64,000 bases of DNA from Adineta vaga (GCA_021613535.1 CP075492.1:7068001-7132000); one strand, 5' to 3'. Numbered from the stretch's first letter, positions 2,537 through 14,983 are shown. Notes: a model not told the origin generated them from the letters alone. Made by a program: numbers and translations.

Positions 2537-4041
2537 TCATCTGACTTGATATGCTACAATTGATGCATGATCTAATTTGCCAGGAATTTTACCAACTTTA
2601 TTTCGCATTTTTAATTCAAATTTACTACGATCGGAACCTTCAGTTTCTTCATTCTCACGAACACCTTGTTCTATCGTTTGTCTTAATTCATCTGTTAATC
2701 GAAGTACATATTTCATCAAACGATTACATAGTTCTCGAGCATTCATTTGTTCTCCATTACTAGCAATCGATAGTTGCATTTGATTCAGACTAGATAAATG
2801 TCTTTCGTACGCAGTCATTAACACAGGTGGTGTTGTCGATATTGTATTACTTGATTTTCGAGCAAGCAATGGAGTTTTAACACTCGCTGCAATACCACTT
2901 ACACATGGATCGAAATTATCACTAATTCCGTCAGTTGTTAAAAATACAAAATCACCCTGATCGACTTCCATTAATGAATATGTTAAATTGGCTAGATCAG
3001 CTTTTTCATCCATTGTCGTTCCCAACGCACCACCTGGTGAACGCATATCACGTTCATTATTTAGATCACGAGATCCTAGAAGAATACTACAATAAAATAT
3101 CAAGAAAAAAAGAAAAGATCAAAATAACCCTGAGTTAATTCGAAGACAGCTCTTTGTTTTCGACTATATACATATGCATTCGAATCACCAACAATTGCGG
3201 AACATACTAACCAACAACGATTCGATGGACATATGATACTCATTGTTAATGTTGTTAACGAACCTTCACTTTTGAAAATTAATTGTTGAGCTGCTTCAAT
3301 TGCTGCTCGAATTCGTTCAAAAACATCCTGTAAAGACAAACCTTTGTCATAACTTCAAACAAAACTAACTCTTACTCTTGTTGTAGATAACTTCTTGTCA
3401 AATAAATCTTGATTAAGACAAGTCATGGCACCATGTATTGCACATCGAGCAGCAAGTCGAGCTTTATATCCCCAATTCACACCATCAGCAATCATTAAAA
3501 TAGCATTATTTTCCTGAGCACATATTCCAAAACAATCAGCAATAGGTTCACCTTGAATGAAGATACATTATTTCATTACAAAGGAAAGCAAAATTCATTG
3601 TTTTACCATTCAATTCTCCCGTAAATGGATTACGATCATACAGTGATGTTGATAAACCACAAGCAAATTCATCATTAGGAATTTGCCAATCGTATTGTCC
3701 AGCAACTTTGATTGATTTATTTACTTTCAAAATTCCTTTTTCTATAGAAAATTTCATAGTCAAAGATTGATGATTGAAAAATAATTCGTTTACTTTGATG
3801 TCGAGCAATATCGACTAAACCAACATCTGGACCTGATTCACAAGCAATAGTATTTTTACTTAATGGTGAAATAATTTCTACAGGTAATTGTAAATAGTTG
3901 TCATTTGCATAGAGTTGATAACGTTGAAGACGATTCGATGGTGAGAAACTTAAATCAAACAATCTTCATTATAAATTTCAAATCAAAATCAACTTACAAT
4001 GAAGCAACTTTTTGCCAAATATAACGTCTTTCTGTAGTCAT
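2537..4041 (-). CDS. PP2C-like domain protein (Drosophila CG9801-like), multi-exon
   Basis: Spliced motifs [53 protein letters not shown]; ATG at 4041. Confidence 0.85.
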
Positions 4042-4114
4042 CTAGAAAGGAGAAAAGAAGCTATCACAAGTGATAAACGAATAACAGTAGTGTAACAAAA
4101 GACAAAAGACAATT

Positions 4115-4513
4115 TTATTTTGTTTCTGTTAAAATCGCTGGTAAAGTACATGAAATTGTAATTGTCGATACCCAACGTGTATCACTCATTGGTTCCAAAT
4201 CATCTAATAAAGGCATTAAATGATCAGTAACTTCGATACTTGCTATTGATGTCTGTAATTGACAATTCGTTTTCAACTGAAATTGTAATGCCAAATTAAT
4301 TGTTCGTTGTAAAGCTGAACCCATACCATAGATTGTTATTTCTCGATAATTTCCATTCGATGATATTAATTTCATACAACGTTCTAATTGTGCTTTGAAA
4401 TTTGTTTTACGTGTAACGTAAATATCATTTGGACGTTTTGAAAATTGTTTATTATTTAAACGTTTAAATATTGAATATTCTTCAGGATCACGATGAAATT
4501 TTTCTTCACTCAT
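4115..4513 (-). CDS. POP7: RNase P/MRP subunit Rpp20 (Alba-like), intronless
   Basis: RPNDIYVTRKTNFKAQLERC...EITIYGMGSALQRTINLALQ matches the Rpp20 consensus. Confidence 0.9.
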   Translation of the reverse strand: MSEEKFHRDPEEYSIFKRLNNKQFSKRPNDIYVTRKTNFKAQLERCMKLISSNGNYREITIYGMGSALQRTINLALQFQLKTNCQLQTSIASIEVTDHLMPLLDDLEPMSDTRWVSTITISCTLPAILTETK

Positions 4514-4543
4514 CTAGAATAAAATCGAGAAAAATTAAGAAAC

Positions 4544-5121
4544 TTATTTTAAATTAGGTAATGATGAACCAAAATAAATTCTTAAATCATTTAATGTAGT
4601 ACGAACAAGTTTAGCACGAATAGTTTGCGAATTTAAACGTTTATAAGCTCTGAAAACAATGATATTCAATTGATGAAGAAGAATAAACATAGAAAATATT
4701 GCTATCTTACTCCCAACGATGGCAGCCACCCATTGCAAAAAAATAATTATTTTTCGAATCAGGTGCTTCATACCAAAGAATATCAATTGGTGGAACTTGA
4801 TTAGTTTCCATTGTCTATAGGAAGAGAAGTACGATAAATACTTTAATGAGGAAAAAGTATAATTATTTTTACTTGAATAGTTTCCATTAGTGATTTAACT
4901 TTGTTTTCATCGAGTATTGATGGCAATGGACGTGTTATGTCTTTCATCGGTATATTGTAGATTGTGTCGATTGATGCAGAATGAATTGATGATGATGACG
5001 ATGATGATGATGAAGAGGAACAAGCATTATTACTTAACGATGAACTTGTTTTCATTGTCAAGTAAATGGAAGGAAATAGAGTCGTAGAAAATAAATTTAA
5101 GTAAATAAATCTTGTCAACAT
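4544..5121 (-). CDS. SRXN1: Sulfiredoxin, 3 exons
   Basis: IPMKDITRPLPSILDENKVKSLMETIQ | VPPIDILW...YFFAMGGCHRWE | AYKRL...DLRIYFGSS; catalytic GCHR motif present. Alternative ATG at 5055. Confidence 0.92.
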
Positions 5122-5243
5122 AATAGAATTTTCTTTTTTGAATGATCAAATTATAATCGAGCAGAGCCGAGCAAAGCAAGATAATGAGTCATCATTCAAT
5201 TGACGATTCGTGAACGTATAGCGACATCTTATTGATATGTAAG

Positions 5244-5265
5244 AATGAATGAATGAATGAATGAG

Positions 5266-5296
<31 letters not shown>
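5244..5296. repeat. (GAAT)n and (GAT)n microsatellites
   Basis: Directly visible tandem gaat and gat units. Confidence 0.9.
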
Positions 5297-6020: not shown

Positions 6021-7985
6021 TTAACGAAATTCTAATTGACCTTCGACGCCGTCAATTTCAGGAATAGTCATACCATTTTGAAGTAGAAACGTACGTTTTA
6101 TATAAGCATAAAGTAAATCAGAAATCAGAAATGTCTGAAAAGAAAACAGTTGAAAAATTTAGAACTCGATCGCTTTTTACATTAATATTTCTTACCTGAG
6201 CAACGTTGAAGACCATTGTCATTGCAAAGTAAAAATTAGCATTTGCACTTCCTGTATATATCCACAAGTACCATGTTATTGGTGCCATTAAAACAGCGAT
6301 CAATACCATACAAATAATTATTAAACTATGTCGAACATCTATACATGTATAAAACAAAAATCATTCATTTGAAATGACGAAATTTTCTTCTATTTACATC
6401 GAAAAAGAAAACTCCATATGGGTAGATAATTGAAATAGAATGTTGCATCACCATAAGCTGGATATGATTTAAATGTGCAAAAGATTGCACACAGAAGCCA
6501 AAAGAAGAATATTGGATCTTTTCTAGAATACGAAAAAAAACACCCCCAAATAATCAATTCTGCTTAAATCAGTTCACCATACCGTAATCGAATAGCAAAG
6601 GGAAATAGATAAAGTAAGAGTACATGCATTTGAAATGTCCAAACAAATAATGAACGAAAATGATCGAACATTTCGGTAAAAAAATACCAAAAGATTCCGA
6701 CATTTGGTGTATAATCTGGTACATGAAATCTATTAGAACAAACGAGTTAAAAAATCGTATAGAAAAGAAAATGACTTACATGAAACTATAGGTTGATTCA
6801 AGAAATGACCATGATTGATGATTAAGAAAGAAATTAAGAAAAAGTACACTAGTACTAACAATTGCAAAAAGAATAATCACAAAGAATGCACGAATAATTG
6901 AATGATTATTCTAAAAGAATAATAAAACATTAAATTCTTTCATAGTTAACAAAATTTACAGATTTAGTTTTGGAAAATTGCAATAAAGCTGGTACAATTA
7001 AAACAATAGGATAGAATGAAATTGAACTAGTTACAGCTAATATTATTATAAATGGTACCAATTGATCTAAAGATTCAATTCTTTGGAAATCTTTCATAAG
7101 AATAAAAGAAAATCTTACATGTGGTAAAGAAATAAAATGTCATAGTCAATAATAGATTATGAAAAACTAAACTTGATTTAGCTAGACATGTACCAATACC
7201 CAAGGGATTTATCATTGTACTATTAAAATAAGTATAAAACAATTGATTGAAGAAGAAAATTAGAAAGACTATCATACCATAACAGAACAGCTAATGCACT
7301 TTTTTCAACATTCTCTTTTGTTAACCATAAGGATTTGCTGTCTTCTTTATACGTTGCCTTTTCTTTGACTTCTTGTGCAAACTATGAACAAGAGAATTAG
7401 TTTTTTCTAATTCAAACGATGACATACAGTACTTACAAGTTCTGTTAAAATTCGACGTGCTATTTTGTAGGTGAATAAACCAATTAGAAGATCAGCTATC
7501 TAAATAATACAAATGAAATATGTATTGTGAACTTATAAATAAATGAGCACTATTTACAATAAATAAACCTTCGATATGTCCTTGTGTTAATGCATGTAGT
7601 TTGGAATAGAAGAAAAGTGATAGCGGTGTCTAAATAGAAGAAGAAATATACGGTTAAACTTTAATCGTGAACAATTGAAAATGAATTAGAAAAGAATTTC
7701 AATAGGAAAACTGTCTTTACATACTTCATGTACAACAGAACCAACAAATGGTGAAACGTTTAGTTTCTGTAAGTAAATTCCTTCAATAACTATAGAAAAA
7801 CAACAACAACAACATCATCAAACTTTTATTGCTATTCATCAATATTTACCTCTTTTCCATGAAGTCAATGGTGTTACAAATTCACCACTATCTTCAAAAT
7901 AATTCCTGATTCTTGTTTGAAAGAAAAGAAATACTCGTAACACAAGACCTATACCAATATAGGCTGTTTCAATTCTATCTAACAT
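6021..7985 (-). CDS. PIGU: GPI transamidase subunit PIG-U, multi-exon
   Basis: N-terminus EFVTPLTSWKR|VIEGIYL...SPFVGSVVHE; internal PNVGIFWYFFTEMF and FKSYPAYGD; C-terminus WYLWIYTGSANANFYFAMT. Confidence 0.92.
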
Positions 7986-8179
7986 CTTGAAAAAAAATTT
8001 ACAATAAAATATTTTGTTTTATTTTTAGAATAAAGAAGATTTAACGAATACATAAAGAAAACTCAGATACATAATTATTTGAGATTTAGTTTAATAAAAA
8101 CACACGCACATACACATACACATACACATAAAGAAACTGTTTAGATGAAAATGACTAGAGAGTCCCAGATACACATGAA

Positions 8180-11100
8180 TCATGGCTGGAATGCATCATA
8201 ACAGATAGAACCGGTTGTTACTTAGACGAAAAATAGAAATAATTATAAGAAAACATGATTTTCTGAAGAATCATCACGAGATGTTTGTCGTGATGACCTG
8301 CTGCTCTACTTAATTCTTCAATAATTGGATTAGAAACTATTGAAGACTTTCGTGGTGAACGAACAGACGTTTTTGCATTGTCATTTGCATCATCTTTATT
8401 TTCTTCATTCATACTTTTTTGTACTATATTTTGTCGTTTTCCTTTTCGACGATTTTTTATACCCATTTCTTTATCCATCATATCCTCTAATGTTCCATGA
8501 TCAACAACAGTTGATATCGGTGCAATTGATATATCACGTACAGCACGAAATTCTCCGCAATTATTCAGATGTTCGTTTTCTAAACGAAAATAATTCCAAA
8601 TAAAACGACGAAAAATCTCGATTAAACCAAAGATAAAACCAATAACATCTGCATATTCAGCTGAACGTGTTCGAAATTGCATAAAAACATTTATAATCCA
8701 TATATAACGAAAGAGAATATTCTCTACAATAGCCGCATAATAGTAAAATCTTGATGGATAAACAATTTGATCACGTAGAAATTTATTTTCACCTGCATTT
8801 TTATCAAAAAATCCCCAATCCATTTTTAAATCCCAAATAACTTTATATGTTGCACCAATAAATGATGCAATAATCCAAATATATAAAAATGGATTTGATG
8901 TTGGATTATCTAGATAATGAATCGCTGTTGCACGACGTGCTGCATTTGTACCAGTAACAAAAAATCCACTAGCATATTTACCAGCATTGACTAAATGTGG
9001 AAATTTTTGTTTCGTATCTCGATAACGTCTTAAACATTGTGCAAAACGAAACCATGATGGTAATACCATGAGAGCTGTTTGCAAAAGAACTTGAGGCCAA
9101 CCGTGACAAAGTATTCCACGTGTTGGAGATGAAGAATAGACTGGCCACCATCCAACATCATAAATATAGAAACAAAAGAAATATTCAATATCGAAAAAGA
9201 TCAATTCAAGTGATGTTAATTGATCACCAAGCCAAAAGTCAGCGAAACCAATACGATAAAATGGTGCGCAAATAACTCGACCTAAAGTTTTGAGAAACCA
9301 AAATCGAGCATGATGATAAAGCGTATGTGTTGGATTGAATAGAAATAAAAGAATTAATGTAACAAAACCAAGTGGTTGTATAAATGGATGAAAATCAAAA
9401 TAAGATGATAAAATAAATCCTGTAAAACTTAAAAACCATAAGACAAAAAGAAAAGTACCAAATTCAAGAAATTGTTGATAAGTTAAATGATTTCGTGGAT
9501 CAATTTCAAATATAAGAACATGATTGACGCCTGATGATGACCATCCGTAAACATTTATACCGACTAGAACAATATGAAGGACAACAAGAAAGGTTGACCG
9601 ATAGAGAAATAGTGCTTGTCGCCAAGCAAGTGGCTTCGTTGATTGACTATCATGAAGACTAGCTCCAAGAGCAATAACAGCAGGAAGTAAAAGACAAATC
9701 ATTCCTAGAGAGAGAGAGGGAGAGAAGAAAATCGTAGTATTGCTAAAGAGAAGAAAGTCTTTTACATTCGTACCAACGAAAACTCCGACACGAAATGTAA
9801 CAGCAGGTGATTGTTTTTCTTCCAATGGTGGTACACGTAAACGTTTCATTGCACGAGCTCGATCGCCTGATTCTAATGTATCAGTATACAAAGTTTCACA
9901 ATCATTTATTAACTGTTCAACTCGTTTCGATGTATGAAAAGGAGCTGAATCAATATGTAACTTTCTAGAATCCAATGATCATTCTTTTTTTTTCAAATGG
10001 AAACTAAATAGAAGAAATCGTTTTCTTACCGCCATTCTTCACCGCGTGCCGTTTGAAATAATTTATCATGTTTTTTTAATATTTTACGAAAGCCTGTGAA
10101 ATTCAATGTTTGATAATTTTGTAATAAAACTAACATTAAATAAAATTCACTGAAAGCTAATTTTAAATCATTTCGTTTTCGATATTGAACACGTTGTGTT
10201 TGTTTTTCACGAGTTTTTTCTACTAGTCGTTCTGGTAATACACGTGTTAATGGTGCCATAACAGTATGATCTTCTGAACGACGTTTAATTGTAGATGATT
10301 TCGTTTCATCATGTTGGTCATTATTGACAGATGCTTCAGCACCCGATGCACCTGAACGATGAGATACATGACGACGAGCTTGTTCCATATGACCAACCTC
10401 ATTTTTCAATGTTTCCCATCGTCGTAATGCTCTATTAAAATCGAACGATTTATATAACGTTTGTTAAATCATCACTGGATTTAGTGTTTACTGGAAATAT
10501 ACTCAAATTTAGCAGCTGATAAACTCATCGTACAATTCATACAGTCAGCTGTAAAGTTATTTTCGTAGGATTAAACTTGACATTTATATTAACCTTACTA
10601 TTGAGAACAAATATCAGGTGGTTAACAAACTAAACAATCGATACTCAAATCAAAACATGGAAAGTACGAAACGACTACAAGAATAAGATATATCTACACA
10701 TAAGAATCAATCATTACTATGACTTTAATTTCGGATTGATATCGATAAAGATAGGAATCACTTTATAGACAATAATATCAAAGAGTGTGCTATAGTTTTT
10801 GATTCTCATACATAAACGGCAATTGAAAAATAAATTTGACTTTGCATATACCTTTAGGCAAATCTTATTATCATTTTTGGTGTTATAAAAGCCAAAAAGA
10901 AATCGATTTACTTACTCAGCAAGTTTTTCTGCAAAAAATGTATTGATTTTCGTTGCTTCTTTTTCACAATACTACATGACAAAAACGTAAAAAGGCAGAT
11001 ATTGATGGTTGATTTTGTAGATTTTTACCTGGAAAAAATGTTCATCAACACGGATGAAAAATTGCTCACGTAAAACATTATCACTATCATCAACAAAAGG

Positions 11101-11668: not shown

Positions 11669-13266
11669 TTATCGTCGCCAAAGTTTTAATACTTTATCTT
11701 TTCCACCACTAGCAACTTTTTGTCCATCAGGACTATAATCAACTGCATAGATTTCATCCGCATGACCGGGTAAATCGAAAAGAAGACAACGTTTTTCAAT
11801 ATTCCAAATTTTCAATGTACTATCAGCACTACCCGAAACAAGTAAACGAGAATCAGCTGACCAAGCTATTTGATAAACAGCTTGTACATGACCACGTAAT
11901 GTTGATAGAAAAGCACCAGTACGACTTGACCATAATTTAATCGATTTATCAAAACTAGCTGATGCTAATAGACGTGTATCTGGAGAAAATTTCACATCAT
12001 TGATTAATTGTTGATGACCTGTCATACGTGCTAAAGGTTTCTTATCCGTTTCAGGTTTCCAAAGATAAAGTGTAAAATCATCCGAACCAGATACTAATCG
12101 TTCACCACCATTAGTATCAAATAATTTATAAACTTTTTCATATCTTTCAAGTGCTAATGTTTGCAATGTTGTTTCATCAAGATCTTCATAATCATCGGAT
12201 GCACGTTCTTTCGATGGTTCATATGCACCCGTTCGTAAAACATAATCTGTTGATAATGCAAGTGTATTAACCCAATGTGCATGTCCTTCTAGTGTTCGAC
12301 AGAGAACACCATCTGTTGTACGCCAGACTTTGATTGTACGATCTTGTGATGCTGAATAGAGTAGATTTTGTCCACCCCATTTAATACATGTTACTGACGC
12401 TGTATGACCGCTGAGTGTAAGCATACATTTAAATAAATGTGTATCCCAAAGTTTAATTGTTGTATCTTTACTGCCCGATGCTAATAGACGACAACTACCA
12501 TTTAAATGTAATGGTTGCCAACTTAAAGAATTTATCCATTGACGATGACCAGATAATAATTTTGTACCTAGAAAATCGTAGTTAGTATTCAGATATCTAC
12601 GTGAAATCACAATCGAAAACTTCTATATGCCAAATAAATTGTCTCTTCTGGAAAGAAAAAAGAAAAAAAAAGATTCTATTTACCATGTTGTTTCCCTGTT
12701 GCACCAATCCATAAACCAATAAGTCCTTGTTTACATGATGATGCTACAATTTTCCCATTCGGTGCCCAACTTAAACATAATATCCAATGTTTATGTGCTT
12801 TACCATATTCATCAAATGGTGTTTGTGTATTCAAATCCCAAAATCGAACAGTCGTATCTCCACTACCGGATGCTAAAAGTCTTCCATTGGGACTAAATTG
12901 TAAAATGGTAATGGCTTCTAAATGTCCTTCAATTGTTGCCGTACATCGTTCAACTGGTATAACTTGAAATCGTGCTTTAGGAACACAAACAATATTTAAA
13001 GTTTTTTCAAACATTTGTTTATTTGTTTGTTCTTGAAAATATTTTTCTAATGATTCTTTTATTTCAATTTCATCAACATAAAATGAATAGGGAATGGCAT
13101 CATTGCTATCATTTGATGTCAATGCTTCTTGTGCTTGAGCAAGTCCATTAGCGACGCTATTCAATTGACGAAGATTGACCATTAAAGGTATTTCAACAGG
13201 TCCACCAAGTAAAGTTCCATTTTCAAGTTGAAACTGACTGAGAATTGCTTTATCTGATGATGACAT
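11669..13266 (-). CDS. NLE1: Notchless homolog (WD40 ribosome assembly factor, Rsa4), 2 exons
   Basis: N-terminal NLE domain (PYSFYVDEIEI), WD40 repeats, GHAHWVNTLALSTDYVLRTGA, ERLVSGSDDFTLYLW, ASGGKDKVLKLWR. Confidence 0.95.
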
Positions 13267-13354
13267 GATCACTTGATGAATAATTTTATACTTATATAAA
13301 ACAAAAAGAAAAGAATGATAAACAAAACTGAGGGTAAATTCGACTAAATTATCT

Positions 13355-13618
13355 CTATTTTAATTCTTTATTTCGTTTATTTTCTAAATAATTTTCAATA
13401 TCATTAATCATCAATTCTTTTTCACGTCGTTGCATTGCTTTTTTACCAAATAAAGAAAATAATAATCCACCAGTTATCCATAGAAGAGCATAGCGTGTAT
13501 TAGTATTTTTAATTATACGTTTAAATAATGTTGACCATGCTGTTTGAGTCGGCCTCTGTTGATGTGTTGTTTCCGGTTTATGTTGATTAATAATCGGTGA
13601 TGGATGAGTTCCTATCAT
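13355..13618 (-). CDS. Hypothetical 87-aa single-pass membrane protein
   Basis: Clean ATG-to-stop ORF with one hydrophobic segment (YALLWITGGLLFSLFG) and a charged tail; sits inside the gene run with an acceptor-like upstream sequence. Confidence 0.65.
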   Translation of the reverse strand: MIGTHPSPIINQHKPETTHQQRPTQTAWSTLFKRIIKNTNTRYALLWITGGLLFSLFGKKAMQRREKELMINDIENYLENKRNKELK

Positions 13619-13669
13619 CTTATCTATCTAGAAAAAAAAACCGAACATACGATTAAACAAAAGAACACA

Positions 13670-13997
13670 TCATTTCGTAGTTTGTAATTTAAGATCTAAA
13701 AACAAAATAGAATTTATTTTTTCGAATCAAAATCATTGATGTCTATCGTCAAAGTACATTGCTCAAAGTGACGAAAGACATCGAATTATGAAAAATACCT
13801 CGTTCAGCTTCTGCTTGTCGTCTTGCTTGAATTTCTTTTAATGCTTCTCGTCTTTCAATCGCTTCTTTCGCTTGTTGAAGACCAGGCTTGAATGTATAAA
13901 CACCAGCTATAACACCAATAACACAAGCAACTGTAAAATCAAACCATGACATTCGTTTTCGAAAGGCAATATTAGGAATACGAAATCTAAAAGCCAT
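13670..13997 (-). CDS. PIGBOS1-like mitochondrial outer membrane microprotein
   Basis: RMSWFDFTVACVIGVIAGVYTFKPGLQQ resembles human PIGBOS1 as recalled ([28 protein letters not shown]). A probable intron at 13696-13798 gives the C-terminus ...DLKLQTTK*; unspliced stop is at 13749. Confidence 0.7.
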
Positions 13998-14032
13998 TCT
14001 ATCTGAAATAAAACAAATTCACTTTTTTTGTA

Positions 14033-14983
14033 TTAAGATTTTGTTAAATGATAAACACGTTTGCCAGCTTTCAAACAAATATCATCAATAGGTATAATCA
14101 TTGAATTAGGTTGACATCGATATTGTTTAAAGACAGACTAAAAACAAAGAATTCATTTGTTCGTTCATAGTTATAAAACTTATCGAATAGAAAATGTGGT
14201 TTGTATTCGAAGAAAGGTATTATTTTATTCTACAGGTATTGTTTGGAAGTGTACTTACCTGACATTTCTCTTTCCAATCATGTGGTAGTTTTTCTTCTCG
14301 ATTTTTATGAGTTGAACATCCAAAACTGACATGAAAACATGGATTCTAAAACAAAACGATTGATCGAACGAGAAAAAAACAAGAAATTACTTCATAATAA
14401 CATGGATATCGATGTTCATTGAGTATTTTATCAATAATTTCTACTAATCGTGAAAACTGTCGATGTTGATCTAGAGTAAATACTAGAAACGATCTATAGC
14501 AAGAAAATCTATGTTAATTAAACACTCGAATATTTTTTACTTATACATACGTTGATCCATCTTCATTGTTTAATATCGTTACGTCTTCAACATGCGTAGA
14601 AAATCTATTCATTGATATAGCTAATTCATTTTGAATATTTTTTCGAATCGATTCAATATGATGAAAACGAACAGGAAATGTTTTGGATAAACTTATGTGT
14701 AATTCTCCCAAACGTTTCCAAATTTCCGTCTTCTCATTAAAAATATCGATGACATCATCAATCATTGTATCTATATACGATGAACAATCCACTAAAAAGA
14801 GTAAAAAATCGTCATTTTTTTTATTTTCATAATTCTATCAAAATGTTTACCAAATGCATAAATCGCTAAGGCCCAATTTCCTTCTTCATGAGCAAATAAT
14901 CTCACTCGATCATTTTGATTTTGTTCAGTTGATACACGTTCTTCATTTTCTGATTCCGAAGAACTATATAACACAAGACTCAT
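14033..14983 (-). CDS. USB1: U6 snRNA phosphodiesterase Usb1/Mpn1 (2H phosphoesterase), multi-exon
   Basis: MSLVLYSSSESE...RVRLFAHEEGNWA; two HxS motifs (LHISLS, FHVSFG); C-terminus ICLKAGKRVY. Confidence 0.9.

Follow-up and report, generated by a model that had tools for sequence, protein, structure and literature searches.

A Candidate Operon of Sulfiredoxin, Rpp20/POP7 and a PP2C-like Phosphatase, Resolved by Spliced-Leader Trans-Splicing, from Adineta vaga, a Bdelloid Rotifer

Overview

The stretch of DNA analysed here, referred to as the window, is a 64 kb segment (C3:7068001-7132000) of the 100.8 Mb, six-contig genome of the bdelloid rotifer Adineta vaga. It carries three functionally unrelated genes, encoding sulfiredoxin, the RNase P/MRP subunit Rpp20 (POP7) and a PP2C-like phosphatase, which lie head to tail on the minus strand and are separated by very short spacers. 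The most economical reading of the sequence is that the trio constitutes an operon resolved by spliced-leader (SL) trans-splicing and resembling the operons of tunicates at its first junction, a reading to which we give a probability of about 0.6. Addition of the SL at the two conserved acceptors that adjoin the POP7 and PP2C-like start codons is very likely. From the sequence we infer co-transcription of the three genes, SL addition at both sites, the positions of polyadenylation and the roles of the motifs described below.

Splice Acceptors at the Start Codons

Spacer 1 (4543-4514) has the sequence gtttcttaatttttctcgattttattctag and spacer 2 (4114-4042) ends in cttcttttctcctttctag; the start codons of POP7 and of the PP2C-like gene are each preceded by AG, by a pyrimidine tract with AG and by CTAG. 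Among the 2,941 ATGs on both strands of the window, 4.9% follow an AG, 0.58% follow a pyrimidine-rich tract with AG and 0.2% follow CTAG, and chance is excluded as the source of the acceptor context at both start codons. The sulfiredoxin ATG has no pyrimidine tract with AG, and the spacers that flank the trio are far larger, with 389 nt to the gene of an M24 peptidase and about 900 nt from PIG-U.

The initial annotation of this locus had placed spacers of 30 and 73 nt between the genes, with a splice acceptor exactly at each start codon and little room for a promoter. The lengths hold to the base, the AG adjoins the ATG in 16 of the 17 orthologous spacers available from Adineta and Rotaria, and these spacers span no more than 20-82 nt. 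The sole exception is spacer 1 of A. steineri, where the AG lies 3 nt 5′ of the ATG. In seven Adineta lineages spacer 1 measures 20-32 nt, whereas Rotaria has 81-82 nt; spacer 2 measures 43-79 nt in the two genera, with the AG directly at the ATG in all of them. Orthologous spacers cannot be aligned; their length and sequence drift while the AG stays, and no conserved splice donor is found in the spacers of the Adineta and Rotaria orthologues. As read from these comparisons, the pattern marks a 3′ splice site under selection, without a partner donor in the spacer. Spacer 1 begins with GT in A. vaga and was considered as a cis intron, a possibility that was rejected given its length of only 30 nt, the lack of conservation of the GT and the conservation of the stop codon.

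The two AGs could instead be cis acceptors. The mRNAs of POP7 and the PP2C-like gene would then both begin with a 5′ exon taken from the sulfiredoxin unit, be it a 5′ untranslated region (UTR) exon or exon 1 with its phase-0 donor at 4872, and the locus would be one alternatively spliced gene, possibly giving rise to in-frame fusions in which the N-terminus of sulfiredoxin precedes POP7 or the phosphatase. The acceptors resemble the cis acceptors of the same genes, and sulfiredoxin exon 1 ends in phase 0, so that joining it to an acceptor adjoining an ATG stays in frame. Such fusions, on the other hand, would put a conserved targeting-like N-terminal peptide on a nuclear RNase P subunit, for which there is no obvious sense, and the public annotations of four bdelloid genomes contain three separate genes. 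Together with the abundant SL system of the genome and the documented SL trans-splicing in Adineta (PMC3795323), these points make the cis-acceptor explanation very improbable.

Spliced-Leader Genes in the Genome

That SL trans-splicing occurs in bdelloids, as the initial annotation had stated, is supported both by the literature and by the genome itself. It was established by Pouchkina-Stantcheva and Tunnacliffe in 2005, as cited in PMC3795323, and the rotifer SL is given as GGCTTATTACAACTTACCAAGAG (PMC3795323, Table 1). With this one published rotifer SL as the search pattern, the A. vaga genome is found to hold 59 copies at two or fewer mismatches, and the reversed-pattern control gives 0. 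In all eight copies that were inspected, the leader runs into the donor GTAAAT and a conserved intron part of ~80 nt, and many of the SL genes are arranged as divergent pairs ~154 bp apart. Since SL genes and their donors are present, SL trans-splicing is available in A. vaga. Two large clusters of SL RNA genes are located on contig 5 (C5:9884356-9925969 and C5:10912931-10934587, loci L001-L010). The SL RNA genes carry AGATGTCGTGCTCC ~34 nt before the leader, which resembles the AGATGTCGCT motif upstream of sulfiredoxin.

A metagenome scan for the SL joined to the POP7 start gave no match and is uninformative, a control scan showing the collection to be without bdelloid SL transcripts. Three metagenome contigs (L024 4753-4772, L025 8276-8295 and L026 113-132) match the last 17 bases of the SL followed by ATG and were considered as retrocopies of SL mRNAs; they are genomic, are missing the remainder of the leader and contain no open reading frame (ORF), and the matches were set aside as chance or unrelated. 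The contigs of five relatives used below (L013, L015, L016, L017 and L023) are likewise genomic DNA, with introns present.

Candidate 3′-End Signals and the TTGTGAT Element

Both internal stop codons of the trio are overlapped by AAUAAA-like hexamers, which are candidate poly(A) signals (Table 1). Cleavage usually takes place 10-30 nt after the signal, which would place the poly(A) site of sulfiredoxin within a few bases of the POP7 acceptor. The first junction would then have no room for a separate branch site 3′ of the cleavage; polyadenylation and trans-splicing would use overlapping sequence, and on a given precursor one may preclude the other, as in the SL1-type operons of C. elegans and the operons of tunicates. 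In spacer 2, 30-50 nt remain after the expected cleavage site. This second spacer contains TTGTGAT in every Adineta and Rotaria lineage (TTGTGAA in one of them), at 21-33 nt before the AG and 10-45 nt after the stop codon. Because its distance to the AG is narrow and that to the stop codon is variable, the element appears to be set relative to the acceptor, and it is a candidate for a branch site or for an intercistronic processing element. A CCUAAU in the last codons of sulfiredoxin was also considered as a conserved branch site and was rejected, as the synonymous positions vary between species.

These signals bear on a further alternative, in which the mature mRNA would be dicistronic or tricistronic and the downstream genes would be translated by reinitiation or internal entry, as in dicistronic genes of the insect type, without trans-splicing. 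The very short spacers and the common strand of all three genes would suit such an arrangement. It gives no reason, though, for a pyrimidine tract and AG to stand exactly at both ATGs in 16 of the 17 spacers, or for both internal stop codons to retain AAUAAA hexamers, and reinitiation after an ORF of 152 codons is inefficient in eukaryotes. We regard it as the least probable of the explanations considered.

Identity of the Three Genes

The gene coordinates of the initial annotation agree with the reading frames and needed no correction, and its identification of the products as sulfiredoxin, Rpp20 and a PP2C-like protein is confirmed by profile and human-protein matches and by the PF13672 domain of the orthologues. 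For the spliced sulfiredoxin and PP2C-like models, searches were run per exon. Model P0030, which represents A. vaga sulfiredoxin in the database, matches the human protein with E 6e-33, and the active-site motif GGCHRWE straddles the junction of exons 2 and 3. The database protein for this gene is entered as "hypothetical protein I4U23_012954 [Adineta vaga]" and shows 100% identity over the part that was matched. Model P0030 of NCBI (130 amino acids) begins 22 codons 3′ of the ATG at 5121, the extra stretch being window positions 5056-5121 on the minus strand. The N-terminus MLT(K/R)IIYLNLFS is kept across species, which backs 5121 as the start; in its longer form, MLTRFIYLNLFSTTLFPSIY, the N-terminus is kept in all bdelloid orthologues and resembles a targeting peptide.

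POP7 matches human Rpp20 chains with E 4e-21. The length of the PP2C-like protein equals that of the 415-amino-acid orthologues of A. steineri and A. ricciae, both of which have PF13672 (PP2C_2); a single exon of the gene in the window gives a weak match to the same family (E 0.003), and the start peptide is conserved among orthologues. Exact-protein look-ups for A. vaga POP7 and the sulfiredoxin model returned no record. A search of the genome for an older duplicate of the trio found none, and POP7 and the phosphatase are each present in a single copy.

Candidate Promoter at the Head of the Trio

The region upstream of sulfiredoxin contains three elements that are shared between species (Table 1). 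The first and most distal corresponds to AGATGTCRCT, which is found at -99 to -136 in A. steineri, one environmental Adineta and Rotaria. As a general promoter motif AGATGTCGY was rejected, its one occurrence in the window being no more than expected by chance; it carries weight only because it is conserved between species. The second, TGASTCA, corresponds to the AP-1/TRE core and is located between -61 and -74 in A. vaga, A. steineri and Rotaria; over the whole 64 kb of the window this 7-mer is present only four times. In other eukaryotes (yeast and mammals), sulfiredoxin is a classical target of AP-1, Yap1 and Nrf2. The third, the 10-mer TAATTTGATC, does not vary between A. vaga, A. steineri and Rotaria, where it is located at -30 to -35, and it lies within an invariant block of the alignment. 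A (CAT)n microsatellite followed by (CATT)n occupies 5245-5293 of the minus strand, between PIG-U and the upstream motifs of sulfiredoxin.

No conservation between species is found in the sulfiredoxin introns, and apart from the acceptor region neither these introns nor the spacers contain a conserved non-coding block. With the introns unconserved and the spacers offering no room, the sole visible promoter-like footprint is that at the head of the trio.

Conservation of the Trio and Points against an Operon

The comparison of gene order in other bdelloids that the initial annotation had proposed shows the trio to be kept across genera. Orthologous loci were obtained from A. ricciae (L027), A. 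steineri (L014), four environmental Adineta (L015, L016, L017 and L023), L013, whose spacer lengths are those of A. ricciae, Rotaria (L019-L022) and Didymodactylos carnosus (L018). Neither the order of the three genes nor their common strand differs between A. vaga, A. ricciae, A. steineri, the four environmental Adineta, Rotaria and Didymodactylos. The flanking genes differ, with the order M24 peptidase > trio > < PIG-U < SPX-EXS in A. steineri, trio > < PIG-U in Rotaria, SPX-EXS > PIG-U > trio > ABC transporter in A. ricciae, and M24 > < trio < PIG-U < SPX-EXS (plus-strand view) in A. vaga, where PIG-U is upstream of sulfiredoxin on the same strand. Judged from these orders, the trio is inverted as a block in the A. 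vaga/A. ricciae lineage with its upstream region carried along, and the downstream neighbour later changed again. The trio has thus come through a block inversion and three differing flanking contexts intact.

Several observations weigh against the operon. The retention of the block fits a unit, yet the evidence is weak, since breakpoints have little chance of falling in spacers as small as 30-80 nt. In Didymodactylos the gaps within the trio measure 899 and 1,312 nt (L018 4102-5000 and 5445-6756) and contain no long ORF, and within 60 nt of the PP2C-like ATG there is no AG. The order therefore persists where an operon is not required, and order alone is no proof of co-transcription; the tight form may, on this comparison, be confined to Adineta and Rotaria. 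PIG-U also begins at a pyrimidine tract with AAG, ...ttttcaag|ATG (...tttttttttcaag|ATG at 7985, minus strand, in A. vaga), and the context is the same in A. steineri, while its upstream spacer measures 224-246 nt in A. ricciae and A. steineri and contains conserved blocks. With these blocks and a (TG)n run upstream, PIG-U probably has its own promoter. An acceptor at the ATG is therefore not specific to tight junctions, and argues for trans-splicing but not by itself for an operon. Finally, promoters within the coding exons or introns of the upstream genes are possible. As a separate observation, the POP7 ATG of Didymodactylos has an acceptor 11 nt upstream.

Taken to its conclusion, this line of argument makes the trio three independent genes of a compact genome. 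The promoters and transcription starts of POP7 and the PP2C-like gene would lie inside the exons or introns of the upstream gene, the SL joined at AG|ATG would serve only to remove an overlapping 5′ outron, and there would be no polycistronic precursor. The ATG-adjoining acceptor of PIG-U shows that such sites occur beyond tight junctions, the Didymodactylos spacers of 0.9-1.3 kb could house promoters under the same gene order, and internal promoters are known within C. elegans operons. The sulfiredoxin introns and the spacers, however, are without a conserved block, whereas the regions upstream of sulfiredoxin and PIG-U show such blocks. Moreover, a polymerase transcribing sulfiredoxin would pass the POP7 acceptor 20-30 nt beyond the poly(A) signal, and some POP7 mRNA would be hard to avoid. 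Independent transcription of the three genes is considered unlikely, if still a live alternative, and an SL-resolved operon is preferred.

Table 1. Features of the trio and of its upstream region, in window coordinates.
Feature	Position	Strand	Description
Upstream motif AGATGTCGCT, candidate promoter element	5220..5229	(-)	108 nt before sulfiredoxin ATG; sole match in the window
TGACTCA, AP-1/TRE-type palindrome, candidate stress-responsive element	5185..5191	(-)	70 nt before sulfiredoxin ATG
TAATTTGATC, candidate core-promoter (TATA-like) element	5144..5153	(-)	32 nt before sulfiredoxin ATG
Sulfiredoxin gene, first cistron	4544..5121	(-)	exons 5121-4873, 4814-4711, 4649-4544; 152 codons + stop (TAA, 4546-4544); frames and GT..AG junctions read
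AAUAAG hexamer, candidate poly(A) signal	4543..4548	(-)	overlaps sulfiredoxin stop codon; AATAAA, AATAAT or AATAGA at the same position in orthologues
Spacer 1, candidate SL trans-splice acceptor, probably with the sulfiredoxin poly(A) site too	4514..4543	(-)	30 nt, pyrimidine-rich; CTAG, then POP7 ATG
Rpp20/POP7 gene (RNase P/MRP subunit), second cistron	4115..4513	(-)	single exon, 132 amino acids; ATG at 4513, stop TAA 4117-4115; Pfam PF12328, E 7e-19
AAUAAA hexamer, candidate poly(A) signal	4114..4119	(-)	overlaps POP7 stop codon; AATAAA in all Adineta and Rotaria orthologues
Spacer 2, candidate SL trans-splice acceptor	4042..4114	(-)	73 nt; 15-mer of 100% pyrimidine + CTAG, then PP2C-like ATG
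TTGTGAT motif, candidate branch site or intercistronic processing element	4063..4069	(-)	in spacer 2, 21 nt before acceptor AG
PP2C-like phosphatase gene, third cistron	2537..4041	(-)	ATG at 4041; six exons: 4041-3998, 3948-3794, 3741-3607, 3551-3376, 3327-3129, 3075-2537; 415 codons + stop; frames and junctions read

Proposed Mechanism

In the proposed mechanism, RNA polymerase II would start from the promoter-like region upstream of sulfiredoxin and pass through all three genes as one transcription unit. The POP7 and PP2C-like mRNAs would acquire a capped 5′ end when the rotifer SL of 22-23 nt is trans-spliced to the AG next to each ATG, which would leave a 5′ UTR consisting essentially of the leader alone; in the spliced mRNAs, ...ACTTACCAAGAG would run directly into 4513 and 4041. 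For cleavage and polyadenylation the upstream mRNAs would rely on the AAUAAA-like hexamers that overlap their stop codons. The two junctions would differ in their design. The first, of 20-32 nt in Adineta, would have no separate intercistronic region, and its poly(A) site and acceptor, only a few bases apart, may bring the two reactions into competition on one precursor. The second, of 43-79 nt, would have a miniature intercistronic region with the conserved TTGTGAT ~25 nt before the acceptor.

A more elaborate reading can be put forward tentatively, with the odds leaning against its being right in full. It joins two junction types in one operon (polyadenylation of sulfiredoxin against trans-splicing of POP7 over ~30 nt at the first, and a dedicated TTGTGAT at the second) with a stress promoter of the AP-1/TRE type, in a tight form whose origin or retention would be limited to the Adineta and Rotaria lineages, to the exclusion of Didymodactylos.

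Neighbouring Genes

Upstream of PIG-U (window 7983-8300, minus strand; L014 9390-9690), the blocks shared with A. steineri are AACCGGTT, ATGATGCATTCCA and CTCTAGTCAT, together with the (TG)n run. A neighbouring cluster at 13200-14120 of the minus strand has the same architecture as the trio, with short spacers that end in ttatttcag|ataga|ATG and tttttctag|atagataag|ATG and a third with the AG 5 nt before the ATG.

Comparison with Known Operon Systems

The locus shares several properties with the operons of tunicates (Ciona and Oikopleura) and with the SL1-type operons of C. elegans. Unrelated genes lie on the same strand and a single SL type would be involved, there is almost no intercistronic region, the poly(A) site would have to be at or next to the acceptor, to which the 20-32 nt of spacer 1 in Adineta correspond, and the 5′ UTR would shrink to the leader. 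It differs in that processing is here predicted from sequence, in that Rotaria has 81-82 nt at the same junction, and in belonging to another phylum. The second junction resembles the SL2-type operons of C. elegans, with a short intercistronic stretch that separates the candidate poly(A) signal from the acceptor and a short conserved element at a fixed distance before the acceptor. The C. elegans counterpart of this element is the Ur element, and TTGTGAT is a candidate for a similar role. Spacer 2, at 43-79 nt, is shorter than the ~100 nt typical of nematodes. As for the second leader of that system, the 59 SL copies found in A. vaga are all within two mismatches of the published SL, which was the sole query used.

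Operons are also documented in chaetognaths, where genes less than 250 bp apart with SL evidence are counted as such (PMC12460157). The operons of Paraspadella gotoi, a fellow gnathiferan, similarly consist of housekeeping-type genes and have no operon-specific leader, but they were defined with SL evidence, whereas the A. vaga locus is known from its genes and spacers. Trans-splicing is thought to have arisen independently in different lineages, and operons likewise to have evolved independently (PMC12460157). Rotifer operons are listed as "ND" in PMC2481426 and as "not reported" in PMC7986045 (2021), and full-text literature searches for rotifer operons found no paper describing any. On the operon reading, at the probability given at the outset, the locus would be one more case of the SL-resolved operons already known, and new for the phylum as far as the searched literature goes.

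Implications

The trio offers a clean test case, in which the middle gene has a single exon, the first junction spans 20-32 nt, a candidate stress promoter lies at the head and Didymodactylos, with its genes ~1 kb apart, provides a contrast. If the combination of two junction types and a stress promoter is true, a peroxiredoxin-repair enzyme would be induced together with an RNase P/MRP subunit and a PP2C-like phosphatase under oxidative stress or desiccation. Confirmation of the operon would add one more phylum to the short list of those with SL-resolved polycistronic transcription, and would bear on a shared origin of operons within the Gnathifera, between rotifers and chaetognaths.

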